Origin: Bugula neritina
Lineage: Eukaryota; Animalia; Bryozoa
Reading direction: 5' to 3'
Assembly: GCA_964035545.1 (NCBI GenBank)
Contig: OZ037771.1
Location: 8,053,408 to 8,117,407 of the forward strand
Length of the DNA stretch: 64,000 nt
Shown here in pieces: positions 47,781-55,660 of the stretch. The notes beneath the pieces are model-generated. The model was given only the letters and a program-made list of their open reading frames with translations. It searched no databases and was not told the origin of the DNA. The position numbers and the translations under genes were made by a program. Numbering within the stretch: the first letter of the stretch is position 1; every line of letters begins with the position of its first letter.

Positions 47781-49119
47781 TATATATATAACAAATTCTG
47801 TTTAGAAGGTCAAGATTTTTCTAGGAGCTCTTGATAGTAGTGACTAGTGACCTTTTAATAATTGGGCTAAGGACTTGCTTTCTATTGAGGAAAAACAGCA
47901 ATGACTGAATGCCTTTCAGCTTTATAGCCTGCACTGGAGTTGGAACCAATGGCTTTGTGTTTACTATAGGCCATTGTTCCAACCACCATATCATGCCTGC
48001 TCTCTAAGAATGGCAACAAGCTAGTTATTCTCATTAATAAACTCTGATATAGTCAATTGCCAGAGGAAATAAAAATACTGCATTTCCAATAATCTTATAA
48101 ACTAACACATCACAACTTATTATACAATGACACTGGAGTTTTAAAAGCCAGCAAGTCTTGAAAATTTAGCAAATAAAGACTCCTATATATTGATATATTC
48201 ATATAGCATTGTGCTGGAGGAGAAATAAATTTGTGCAGCTTAAGCCTAGTTTACTATTACCTGCTGTACATTTAAAGTTATTCATATGCAGGTGAACACA
48301 CAATGAACCTAAATATATTGCTTAGCTGTAATCAGTGTTTTGTATTATGCTGCAATTCAATACATCAATGTGTTGTTCCTACATTTCATTAACTTTATTC
48401 TAGCTAACAAATCCGGGACTCCCCCTTTTAGCTTAAACACCATACATATAAAGATTTTGTTTTTACTCGTTTCAAGTTTGTGCATAGAGTCAAAAACAAT
48501 TTAAGATAGTGTTTAATGAGACTCAGTCTACAATAATATTCCATATTCTTTGCTTACATAATTGTTGTCAATTATAGGTATAGGCTACATACTAGTGATG
48601 AAACATATTCTTCATTGGACCAGTTGATACCACACAGTGTACCTGCCAGATTATAACCACTGAACAGGTAATTGATATTAAGTAACACTCTACTAATATC
48701 TAGAGTACAAAGCTCTCTGGTATTACTTCCGGTTTTTGTAAACTGCGTAAACGGAAAAGCGGAAAATTCTGCAGAAACGGCGGAAAAGTACTCAACCGAG
48801 CAATCTTTTTGGCATTCGCTGCGTAATACTTTTGTGTATGCACGAGGCATAGGTTTTAGTTGAAAAATGACACAACTCTATTATTAAAATAATCTTGCAG
48901 TAAGAAAACCTTGGCAACGTGTTGAGTACTTAGTCTATTTCACCCCTCTCAACCAACGCGATATCTTTAACTCTACAAGTGCAACCCTTCAACTGTACAG
49001 CTCTAAGACTTACATCTTTTTTGCTTGAACCCAAAATTTTCACTTCGACTTTCCAATATAACAATTTAAGCTAGAGATGGGTAAGCTCAATCTGCTTACA
49101 AATTATTAGTAACACCTGA

Positions 49120-49970
49120 ATTAAATAATTGTCGATTAAAATAATAATCAAATTAATATTATTTAACTGATAATTATTATTAATGAATTTAACAATAATA
49201 ATAATTATTAATATTAATAATACTAATGGTAATACTCATACTGTAATACTTATACTAATACTAATAGTAATACTAAAAGTATTACTTTTACTAATAGTAA
49301 TACTAACAGCGTTTAATTAATAATATTAAATTTAATAATAATTAATATACTTATAGTTATACTTATTAATAGTTATACTTATACATTAACAATAACTTAT
49401 ACTTATGCTTATAGAGTACGATATAATTTTGACTTTAAGTTTAGGTATTGAATTACATTTATTATAATAATTATTTTACTAATAGTGGTAGTAATGGTAA
49501 TACTAATAGTAATACTAATAGTAAATGTAATACTATCAGCATTACTATTAGTATTAGACTTAGTGCTACTAGTACTATTACTATTGTCTATTAGTATTAG
49601 TATTACTATTACTATAAATATTATTATTGGTATTAAGTTAATTAATAATATTTTAGTATTAAATTAATTATTAATAATGATAATAATATAATCATAATGA
49701 TAATTATCATCATTATATAAATTGTAATATTATTATTAATATTTTAATATAATTTAGTATTATAATTATTAATCATAATGATTCATAATAGTATTGGTTT
49801 TCTTATTATGATACTGCAGTAGTAATTCACATCTGCTTATCTTATTTTTATTTTAATTTCGTTTAATTTTAATTGTAATTCATTAATCAGTAATTGTTAA
49901 TTAGTATTGTAATATTAATATAAGTTTATAACTATACTTATAGTATATTGATTAATAATTATTAAGTCTA
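49120..49970. repeat. AT-rich low-complexity (AAT/ACT)n region
   Basis: Visible directly. Confidence 0.8.
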
Positions 49971-50339
49971 AGACAAGATGGATAGTAACACTTATACTAC
50001 TAATGTGTTTTATTCAAATTGCTGGGAAAAAGTGCATCAAACTTTCATATTGATGCAGTTAAACTTAAACATATATGTATTTTATGACTTGGCCGTAACA
50101 TTTATTCAAATGTTATCTTGAAACCAGTTTTTACCCTGTTGAGACTCATTTTGACCTTGGGGTGCAGATATAGTGTATTTTAAATGTTTCTTGTGAGAGT
50201 AGCAGTCTTTCATATAAAATAGGCAAACAGTTTGGTTTTTTTAGCCAAATTATTTTTCTGATTATATGATTTGAATTAAAAAATTATTCATTGTTTAGCA
50301 TTTATTGCAATGGTCATGTTGTTTTGATAATTTTTACAG

Positions 50340-52272: not shown

Positions 52273-53113
52273 ATTTTTATTTGCTGTGCCTTTATACAAA
52301 ACTAAAAAATTGATTTGTTTTTTTTTCCCACTTTTACTCATATCATTGCATCATATTTTATGTTTTATTGTATAAATATCAAATAGTTCTTCAAGTTATT
52401 GTGTTCTTTGATTACATCATGCTGTACAGTAATACATACAAGTTACTAGTCTGTACATTTTCACTCACACCTTTACAATATTATTTTAAAGAACAAAAAT
52501 TTAAAACAACTTTGCTGCCATGACTATTCATTTACTTCTAGTGAGTTATCGATTAAAGTTTTGAGCACAAGGCCTAAGTTTGAGGTAGTGGAAGTATTAT
52601 AACCCATAAGTATTAACTTGGTTTATTTATCAAATTATTTATTTGATGAAATTATACTAATTGAGTCAAACTATTTGAAATAGCATTGTACTATGAATAC
52701 TAACGATAGTTCTACGTTTTATAGTTGAAGTATGAAAATAATGATGAGCATGATAACAATAATAAGCATTTTTTTATTACAACAATTACATGCAACGATA
52801 AATATTAGCTCATTTTCACTGTAGTTTTTAATAATATATTTTTATTTTAGCTAGAATTTCGATAAAAAGGTAATATTATGTTGGCTAGATAACTTAAGTC
52901 GTACGAATGTTAGTTGAATAACTAATATATTTAGTTAATAGTAAAACATCGAAGGTTTTGGTATCTATGCAACTACGAGAATCACAATTATTGGGCTCGG
53001 TTTTGTAGTTTATAAGTTAATTATTAGCAGGTAAAAATGTAATTGTCAACACCATAATAAAAACTAGCTGTGTAACTAAACTCTTTGTGCGCCGACGGCT
53101 TGGATGTTTCCTG

Positions 53114-55460
53114 CAGTGTGGTATATTAAGAGTGTTGACTTTAAACCATGAAAAATCATTATGTCGCTAATGGTACCGCAAGTTTATATAAGTTATAAAG
53201 GAAAAATTTTGCCACTTTTGTGATTTTATTTTTTTTTTATACTATGTGTCCATTTTTTTTAGTTTTGTTTATTGGTAAAGTTTTTAAACATATTTTCAAT
53301 ACATATAAAATTTTAAAAAAAATTAAAACTTAATCATGCACGTAAATACAAAGCTATAAAGTTTAAGCTTCGCTGTGATTACAATGTGAATATGAATTGA
53401 ATAATGCTTGCAATAACCATTTTACACAAAATATGTTACAGTTGCTATAAATGTAAGACTAGTAAATTGGATGCAAATAGGCACGGTGATACTATTTAAT
53501 TTATGCTATTTTTGAAATTTGTAGTAAATATTTGGCATGTATTATATATATATATATATATATATATATATATATATATATATATATATATATATATATA
53601 TATATATATATATATATATATATATATATATATATATATATATATATATATATATATATATATATATATATATATATATTATAATAATATATTATATATT
53701 TTTATGTTATATATTGTTATATTATATATATATTATATAAGTATAATAATATTATATATAATATATATATATTATAATAATGTATTATATAATATAATAA
53801 TATAATATATTATTATATTATATATTATATTATATATATATTATATATATTATATATATATAATATCATATAAAATATATTATTATATTATATTATTTAT
53901 AATATATATATATATATTATAATAATATATTATATATTATTATATATTATATATTATATTATATTATATATATATATATTATACAAGTATAATAATATTA
54001 TATATAATATATATATATATTATAATAATATATTATATAATATAATAATATAATATATTATTTTATTATATTATATATATATTATATATATATAATATCA
54101 TATAAAATATATTATTATATTATATTATTTATAATATATATATATTATAATAATATATTATATATTATTATATATTATATTATATTATATATATATTATA
54201 CAAGTATAATAATATTATATATAATATATATATATTATAATAATATATTATATAATATAATATATTATTATATTATATTATATATATATTATATATATAT
54301 TATATATATATAATATCATATAAAATATATTATTATATTATATTATTTATAATATATATATATATATATATATATTATAATAATATATTATATATTATTA
54401 TATATTATATATTATATTATATTATATATATATTATACAAGTATAATAATATTATATATAATATATATATATTATAATAATATATTATATAATATAATAA
54501 TATAATATATTATTATATTATATTATATATATATTATATATATATTATATATATATATAATATCATGTATAATATATTATTATATTATATTATTATATTA
54601 TATATGATATATATATATTACAATAATATATTATGCATTAATATATTATATAATATATTATATATATATTATATATATAATAATATCATATATAATATAT
54701 ATAATATATTATTATATTATATATTATATTATATATATAATAATATCATATATAATATATTATTATATTATATATTAAATTATATACATTATATATATAT
54801 AATGATATTATATATAATATATATATATATATACATATAATAATATTATATATTATATATATATAATAATTATTATATATATATATATATATTTATCTCA
54901 ATCTGTGGACAGCTTATATATATATATATATATATATATATATATATATATATATATATATATATATATATATATATATATATATATATATATATATATA
55001 TATATATATATATATATATACATGCCAAATATTTACTACAAAATTCAAAAATAGCATAAATTAAGTAGTATTACCGTGCTTATTTGCATCCAATTAACTA
55101 GTCTTACATTTATAGCAACTGTAACGTATTTTGTGTATAATGGTTATTGCAAGCATTATTCAATTCATATTCACATTAAAATCACAACGAAGCTTGAACT
55201 TTATAGCTTTGTATTTATGTGCATGATTGAGTTTTAATTTTTCTTTTAATCTTATGTGCATTAAAAATGTGTTTAAAAACTTTACCAATAAAAAAAATTA
55301 AAAAAAATGTACACATAAAATAGAAAAAAAATAAAATAACAAAAGTGGCAAAATTTTTCCCTTATAACTTATATAAACTCGCGGTACCAATCTCGGCATA
55401 ATGGCGCCCATATGATTCCGTAAGATTTGCTAATGGCAACACTCTTAATATACCACACTG
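53114..55460. mobile_element. Foldback-type DNA element with ~430-bp TIRs (P/Galileo- or hAT-like), nested in the Mutator-like element
   Basis: Arms 53114-53540 and 55021-55460 are reverse complements beginning cagtgtggtatattaagagtgttg; 8-bp TSD gtttcctg at 53106-53113 and 55461-55468. Confidence 0.85.
53541..55020. repeat. Almost pure A/T core: (TA)n plus tandem ~200-bp AT units
   Basis: Recurrent taatatcatataaaat and tattatacaagtataat anchors. Confidence 0.9.
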
Positions 55461-55660
55461 GTTTCCTGATTTTAGGCCACGCTCACGCAACTAGATTTTA
55501 TGTTTTAAATTAGTCGTTAGGAGTTTTTCTGAGTTGTTTTCTCCTGTTTACGTTTCCGCCACTTTTTCCGTTTTACGTTTACGCAGTTTACAAAAACCGT
55601 ATTACTTCTGCAATCATTCATAACTACTCTTCATTATAACTACCTCAAAGGTATGCTAAC

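Follow-up and report, generated by a model that had tools for sequence, protein, structure and literature searches.

The stretch of DNA analysed here, referred to as the window (64,000 nt of Bugula neritina, assembly GCA_964035545.1, contig OZ037771.1, positions 8,053,408-8,117,407, forward strand), carries at 48730-55599 an old, dead, non-autonomous derivative of a Mutator-type transposon, which has lost two internal blocks and retains decayed exons of a ubiquitin-specific protease (USP; peptidase family C19) (Table 1). The exact pair of 24-bp terminal inverted repeats (TIRs) and the exact 9-bp target-site duplication (TSD) bounding 48721-55608, both described in an earlier note on this DNA, are supported by the whole family. 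In the 216-Mb genome assembly (written G000, with C1, C2, C3, C6, C7 and so on for its contigs), the TIR 24-mer gave 41 matches with up to three mismatches, against 0 for the reversed control, and at least 16 copies with both ends were retrieved. A perfect 9-bp TSD flanks 14 of these 16 copies, at unrelated targets; one of the other two has a TSD with a single mismatch and one a TSD of 10 bp. The termini thus cannot be attributed to chance. In the window copy, in the full-length copy described below and in nearly all other copies, the 24-bp TIR has no mismatch. Retrieved loci are given L-numbers, and positions within them are locus coordinates unless a G000 position is given.

The commonest form of the family is 4484 bp long. 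Two 4484-bp copies on different chromosomes are 100% identical, with two further copies at 99.9%, and mobilisation of the short copies must therefore have been very recent; with the 4484-bp form, a second subfamily, its members about 4505 bp in length, shares 97.8% identity. Both internal deletions of the window copy are common to the 4.5-kb copies, which also share its first stop in the zinc-ribbon exons and carry in addition a frameshifting deletion in the next exon, so that the USP is dead in every short copy.

By blastn, the window copy is colinear with the sole full-length copy found in the genome (L041, G000:C1:703709-712977; 9269 bp, exact TIRs, TSD caataaggc) once the two deletions and a single nested insertion are set aside. 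Of the 741 transposase codons, about 650 are gone, and the window copy is non-autonomous because its own transposase is reduced to residues 671-741, interrupted by three stops. The window copy is moreover a mosaic: at canonical positions of about 1200-1800 it is 94% identical to L041 and 85% to the 4.5-kb form, and outside this segment it is 97% identical to the 4.5-kb form (compared with L041 and L046), which suggests recombination or template switching between subfamilies.

The USP exons were tested one by one by Pfam and tblastn, using as a guide the contiguous USP open reading frame (ORF) of a metagenomic relative, L092. Among the C19 boxes that the earlier note had read in order, the Cys-box (GNTCFLNA), QHD and LKRF exons were upheld, two of them with weak Pfam UCH support, and the Cys-box and KRF-box exons are 91% and 82% identical in amino acids to those of L041; the same Cys box is present in L041 and L092; the candidate second exon of the window gave no Pfam signal. 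The remaining two boxes of that reading, 'HSGS' (~51613) and 'GH[Y]' (~51940), had to be abandoned, both being in the spacer, and L041 reads ITGRSDSD at the position of HSGS. The true His-box exon (SGHYVTY...FDDNKV) has no tblastn match anywhere in the window, and ISHDEVSVVQHFGD, which looks like a final exon of the USP, belongs to the transposase ORF, of which it forms the C-terminal end. Stops in the USP exons, also reported in the earlier note, are indeed there: two lie in zinc-ribbon exon 1, at positions where the codons of L041 specify Tyr and Cys.

Table 1. Features of the element in the window, of the full-length copy L041 and of three metagenomic relatives
Feature	Position	Strand	Remarks
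Window
Left TSD	48721-48729		9 bp, tattacttc; same letters as 55600-55608
Left TIR	48730-48753	+	24 bp, CGGTTTTTGTAAACTGCGTAAACG, then CGGAAAA-type subterminal repeats; exact reverse complement of 55576-55599
Left end through KRF exon	48730-51534		= L041 201-3078 (blastn)
USP Cys-box exon	50340-50422	+	ITNFGNTCFLNACIQTIRCTSLLQ; open segment 50270-50479; Pfam UCH positions 3-27, E 0.012
Candidate second USP exon	50588-50707	+	SSNSTDQGLNF...; approximate boundaries; 70% amino-acid identity to L041 segment
USP QHD-box exon	50756-50878	+	LPDFMNNEQHDVAEVLMEVYN; aligns with L041 and L092 counterparts
USP zinc-ribbon exon 1	50957-51082	+	stops TAG 50996, TAA 51017
USP zinc-ribbon exon 2	51127-51246	+	SEVTLQGTLRHQFSSKKLDGYVFE; frame intact in window, frameshifted in 4.5-kb copies
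USP KRF-box exon	51340-51492	+	LPKVLAITLKRFDESGVKL...; Pfam UCH positions 143-176, E 0.0026
Deletion junction 1	51534-51536		2645 bp lost (L041 3079-5723): His-box exon and candidate last USP exon
Spacer upstream of transposase ORF	51536-52030	+	= L041 5724-6241
Deletion junction 2	52030-52040		1943 bp lost (L041 6242-8184), transposase residues ~23-670
Transposase C-terminal remnant, residues 671-741	52040-52252	+	tblastn 72% identity, E 6e-28; three internal stops
Transposase tail and 3' region	52040-53109		= L041 8185-9333 (blastn)
TSD of nested element	53106-53113 and 55461-55468		8 bp, gtttcctg
Nested hAT-like foldback element	53114-55460		non-autonomous, 2347 bp; TIR CAGTGTGGTATATTAAGAGTGTTG at both ends
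Right end	55468-55599		= L041 9337-9469 (blastn)
Right TIR	55576-55599	-	24 bp; exact reverse complement of left TIR
Right TSD	55600-55608		9 bp; = left TSD
L041
Cys box	1792-2001
Candidate second exon	2072-2251
QHD box	2288-2422
Zinc-ribbon segment 1	2494-2625
Zinc-ribbon segment 2	2639-2833
KRF box	2848-3036
His box	3398-3538		EHKGSSPTSGHYVTYRR...WWLFDDNKV
Possible last USP exon	near 4864		tentative; ends ...FARLMFYHL(stop)
Transposase ORF	6175-8397		741 aa, uninterrupted
L090
KRF exon; His exon	3647-3793; 4887-5003
Transposase	8001-9947
L091 (same contig as L083)
KRF exon; His exon; last exon	451-609; 1354-1488; 2258-2329
Transposase	3914-5995
L092
USP ORF	41-850		contiguous, 269 aa
Transposase ORF	732-3128

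The full-length copy and its two genes

L041 was picked out by a genome-wide screen with the Pfam UCH profile (PF00443, cut-off 23.9 bits) as a copy with extra USP signal inside it. All of its USP segments are open and in order, with GNTC, SGHY and FDD present, and the Pfam UCH matches of its exons follow the order of the profile, at positions 1-26 (E 8e-4), 141-181 (E 5e-4) and 198-237 (E 2e-9); the cut-off is passed by the His exon on its own, at 37.9 bits. We infer from the sequence that these segments could be spliced into an intact enzyme. The earlier note had proposed that the window copy might be a decayed member of a family in which the autonomous elements code for a deubiquitinase, and that a copy with a USP plus a DDE transposase be looked for; L041, in which the open USP exons are followed by an uninterrupted ORF for a transposase of the Mutator-like element (MULE) type, bears out the proposal and is such a copy.

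The spacer between the two genes is the best-conserved part of the family, L041 5835-6140 (window ~51650-51950) being 94-98% identical to the short copies, as compared with about 85% elsewhere. This segment matched no Rfam family, and RNA folding gave z = -1.2. It could be a promoter, splice-acceptor region or transposase-binding region. A perfect hairpin with an 8-bp stem (GGACTTGC...GCAAGTCC) is present in the conserved spacer.

The transposase of L041 has eight relatives among 5.8 billion proteins, all of them unannotated, from metagenome assemblies and at 29-43% identity. Conserved across the alignment are ILGIDMTYN, G(T/S)DR, CxxH and NNANESxN; D323, D392, C413 and H416 are invariant across the nine family members, and NNANESxN is kept in all members reaching that far. 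The arrangement D..D..CxxH..E, with C/DxxH between the second D and the E, is what we take to be the catalytic signature of Mutator and IS256 transposases. The sole recurrent Pfam hit is MULE (PF10551), found in 7 of the 9 family members with a best E of 2.5e-4; the match spans profile positions 2-99 of 99, but at 20.2 bits as against the cut-off of 27.6. An AlphaFold2 model of the 741-aa ORF has a mean pLDDT (predicted local distance difference test) of 67 and a pTM (predicted template modelling score) of 0.45, with its core, residues 270-590, mostly above 80, and a Foldseek search with this model placed chains of the ISCth4 transposase at ranks 1-5 of the PDB (probability 1.00, E 2e-5 to 1e-4), followed by Hermes and the P element. 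Sequence searches of the PDB and NCBIfam with the transposase gave no match. Taken together, the 9-bp TSDs, the catalytic motifs and the predicted fold support the view, already taken in the earlier note, that the family belongs to the Mutator superfamily.

A genome-wide Pfam MULE search recovered 11 other MULE loci, none of them near the TIRs of this family, the transposase of which is too divergent to be caught by such a screen. The L041 ORF is the only intact transposase of the family in the genome. A copy on C6 (~C6:6708811-6712773) encodes a transposase 74% identical and full of stops, and relatives at 36-45% identity, at C7:8997272-8999070 and C2:9442016, are broken.

The USP gene in distant relatives and its probable role

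Metagenomic relatives were retrieved by similarity of their transposases, and in two of them, L090 and L091, USP exons lie upstream of the transposase and on the same strand, as in L041. The transposases of L041, L090 and L091 are 39-41% identical pairwise. Across the lineages the USP exons are 33-49% identical in amino acids and retain GN(T/S)C, SGHY and (F/L)DD, and the introns of the USP show no detectable similarity among L041, L090 and L091. No terminal TIR pair was found for L090 within its 11.3-kb contig.

A third relative, L092, is an L091-like element in intronless form, with both ORFs on one contig. Its USP ORF matches the Pfam UCH profile at 71.7 bits over positions 2-253 of 254, and the alignment blocks between the two loci skip the GT..AG introns of L091. 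Since these introns are absent from it, L092 looks like a spliced transcript of both genes. The ESM Atlas places the L092 USP (41-847) nearest to compact stand-alone USPs of Nucleocytoviricota (giant viruses), with scores of 0.95-0.96; this likeness is a lead on the origin of the minimal USP, and no evidence of origin. A homologue search with the L092 USP protein returned one fragment only. When the 63-aa KRF exon was searched against 1.84 billion representatives, the only match was P0001, a fragment of 58 aa from a metagenome contig of 1.2 kb, which was uninformative about gene architecture.

As both the order of USP and transposase and the boxes of the USP are kept across lineages, the USP appears to be a conserved, integral gene of the element and not the passenger of a Pack-MULE. 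Capture of the latter type, the other alternative raised in the earlier note, would mean that fragments of a host USP had been transduplicated without any function for the element. It would suit the absence of a transposase and the broken USP in the window copy and all 4.5-kb copies, as well as the closeness of within-genome nonsynonymous divergence (dN) to intron divergence. The genome, however, contains no parental host gene: throughout it, the peptides of the USP exons find nothing but copies of this element before the Cys boxes of ordinary host USPs, which come next with E values no better than 0.004. Furthermore, the USP stands upstream of an intact transposase in L041 and is also found in L090, L091 and L092, the same order occurs in two lineages with transposases only about 40% identical and with the catalytic residues retained, and two internal deletions of a full-length element account for the short copies. 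Such capture is thus largely refuted, and we consider it very improbable.

In the search for USP genes, further ones were observed on small contigs (among them C34:39409-40449, C83, C63 and C14), in which the only 'stops' inside strong Pfam matches are TAA and TAG. This fits a ciliate with a TAA/TAG-reassigned code, unrelated to the element.

The USP might also have been captured only once, by an ancestral autonomous MULE, and been carried since as a neutral passenger, transcribed but dispensable. The ambiguous signal of selection within the genome and the recent movement of 4.5-kb copies without an intact USP in cis both agree with this. Nevertheless, the Cys, His and Asp boxes and 33-49% amino-acid identity have been kept across lineages that diverged to the same extent as their transposases, with introns that are dissimilar, and neutral sequence should have decayed over such a distance; a neutral passenger is for this reason disfavoured and, in our judgement, unlikely.

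We therefore favour, with a probability of roughly 85%, the reading in which the window copy is a dead, non-autonomous member of a USP-carrying family of cut-and-paste Mutator transposons with a full-length form of about 9.3 kb. Between its two 24-bp TIRs, the full-length element would have, in this order, non-coding sequence (about 1.6 kb), the multi-exon gene of a minimal USP (C19) domain with some 250-270 aa, a spacer measuring about 1.3-2.6 kb, the transposase ORF in one exon (about 715-741 aa) and about 1 kb of further sequence. A common ancestor of the window copy and the 4.5-kb subfamily would have lost two internal blocks, and with them the His-box exon of the USP and nearly all of the transposase, after which the short copies could move only with a transposase supplied in trans, presumably of the L041 type, that recognises the identical termini. 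The window copy would subsequently have gained its stop codons and the nested hAT-like element. In the full-length element, USP and transposase are most likely produced from one primary transcript, an arrangement seen solely in the metagenomic relative L092.

Several observations weigh against this reading or parts of it. The exon boundaries and the start codon of the L041 USP are putative, and an intact protein is not proven. Identity between L041 and the 4.5-kb copies that moved recently is only 83-88%, and L041 hence may not be the copy that mobilised them; the copy counts of the family are lower bounds, as unassembled copies are possible. A comparison of nonsynonymous with synonymous divergence among copies, suggested in the earlier note, gave dN/dS of 0.28-0.36 for five USP exon cores in this genome, yet dN is about the same as intron divergence, so that within-genome selection on the USP is not demonstrated. 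Every Pfam MULE score in the family is below the curated cut-off. The RNA-derived nature of L092 is deduced solely from its missing introns, and in L092 the end of the USP ORF (850) and the ATG of the transposase (732) overlap by 119 nt in different frames. The overlap, which is followed by a tandem duplication of about 25 codons, could be due to frameshifting, to reinitiation, to alternative splicing or to an indel in the assembly.

As to function, other DNA transposons with Ulp1 or OTU proteases offer an analogy, on which the USP would most likely be an accessory factor that deubiquitinates the transposase or chromatin or repair factors at the site of transposition; a role in countering ubiquitin-dependent silencing or degradation is speculation. 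More tentatively, and with somewhat less than even confidence, we propose that a marine-invertebrate clade of Mutator elements, of at least three lineages about 40% apart, keeps a co-transcribed minimal USP because it is needed for efficient transposition, for example to shield the transposase from ubiquitin-dependent degradation or to edit, at the excision site, the ubiquitin marks of chromatin or repair factors. If true, a MULE would for the first time be credited with an accessory enzyme of the C19 type. The question is open to experiment, as the family offers non-autonomous copies that moved very recently, a single autonomous copy that is apparently intact, and distant relatives having the same gene order. 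The window copy itself is ordinary genomic debris, useful as a pointer to the family.

Insertions nested in family copies and neighbouring repeats

The insertion nested in the window copy is a non-autonomous, hAT-like foldback element or miniature inverted-repeat transposable element, with inverted arms of 386 nt that are 91% complementary, long (TA)n tracts and CAGTGTGG... termini, and its target site gtttcctg is present uninterrupted in L041. The terminal 60 bp match dozens of genomic loci at 98-100%, and this foldback family must therefore be abundant and young.

Other loci considered as autonomous copies were ruled out. The 9-kb copies L051 and L055 are 4.5-kb copies interrupted by long terminal repeat (LTR) retrotransposons, and L043 is a 4.5-kb copy interrupted by a fragment of a non-LTR reverse transcriptase (RT). 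The unpaired TIR matches L037-L040, L018-L020 and L056 are truncated ends or contain nested insertions, these being mariner, LTR retrotransposon and hAT, and the family transposase is absent there. The LTR retrotransposons in L051 (1603-5661) and L055 (1571-5416) are different from each other, and their gag-pol ORFs, 1353 and 1282 aa long, are uninterrupted; identical LTR-borne ORFs flank both sides in L051, and both insertions are very young. L056 (791-2479, on G000:C3, minus relative to the element) contains an intact-looking 563-aa hAT transposase nested in a family copy, with a BED finger upstream and the hAT dimerisation motif at the C-terminus. In L039 (2452-3138), a fragment of a mariner/Tc1-type transposase ORF, with 229 aa and no stop before the locus ends, is nested beside the broken C6 copy.

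The window is otherwise rich in repeats. It includes a 1317-aa Gypsy-type pol ORF with RVT_1, RNase H and integrase domains (59776-63729, minus strand), a 644-aa RT-containing ORF (16859-18793, minus strand) and, just downstream of the element (56022-56101), a tandem array of about five copies of a 16-bp unit (GCATTAGTCCGAAGGT-like).

Comparison with known systems

Cysteine proteases have been acquired independently by several superfamilies of DNA transposons, Ulp1 by MULEs and Ginger elements and OTU by Ginger elements and Helitrons, and to our knowledge no one has shown the role of any of these transposon-borne ubiquitin/SUMO proteases. In our full-text literature search we found no description of a USP/C19 gene in a Mutator element, for which USP would constitute a third type of protease. 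Bao, Kapitonov and Jurka (PMC2836005) described Mutator elements with Ulp1 domains from hydra, lancelet and plants and OTU domains in Ginger1 and Helitrons, and put forward a broad involvement of the ubiquitin pathway in transposition; the Ulp1-carrying Kaonashi/VANDAL MULEs are covered by a 2026 review (PMC13317346).

The Mutator elements with Ulp1 (C48), namely the KI-MULEs/Kaonashi of Arabidopsis, CUMULE of melon and MuDR of Hydra and lancelet (PMC2836005, PMC13317346), resemble the present family in that they conserve, as a second coding capacity, a papain-like cysteine protease from the ubiquitin/SUMO system. In contrast, the protease here is USP/C19 and not Ulp1/C48, the host is a marine invertebrate, and the protease is encoded by a separate multi-exon gene upstream of the transposase instead of a C-terminal domain or a VANC-type gene. 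The OTU-carrying Ginger1 and Helitron/Helentron proteins (PMC2836005; PMC4067079; PMC11417382) likewise place a deubiquitinase-type cysteine protease on a DNA transposon, again with a proposed role of the ubiquitin pathway in transposition, although both the protease (OTU as against USP) and the transposase superfamily differ.

With plant Pack-MULEs, the short copies have in common that they are non-autonomous, with host-like coding exons between TIRs and 9-bp TSDs, but the cargo here is without a host parent and was inherited from the autonomous element by internal deletion. The transposase shares with those of IS256 (ISCth4) and eukaryotic MULEs the D..D..CxxH..E arrangement, the RNase-H-like core, which gave the best structural match, and the 9-bp TSDs, whereas its sequence is very divergent, with Pfam MULE scores below threshold. 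The literature search brought up just one published case in which a C19/USP domain is paired with a DNA transposase, XP_001314237.1 of Trichomonas vaginalis, in which an IS5-like transposase_11 domain is joined to a Peptidase C19 domain (PMC2836005). Compared by its published description, that protein is a single fused product of a protist and its transposase is IS5/PIF-like and not Mutator.

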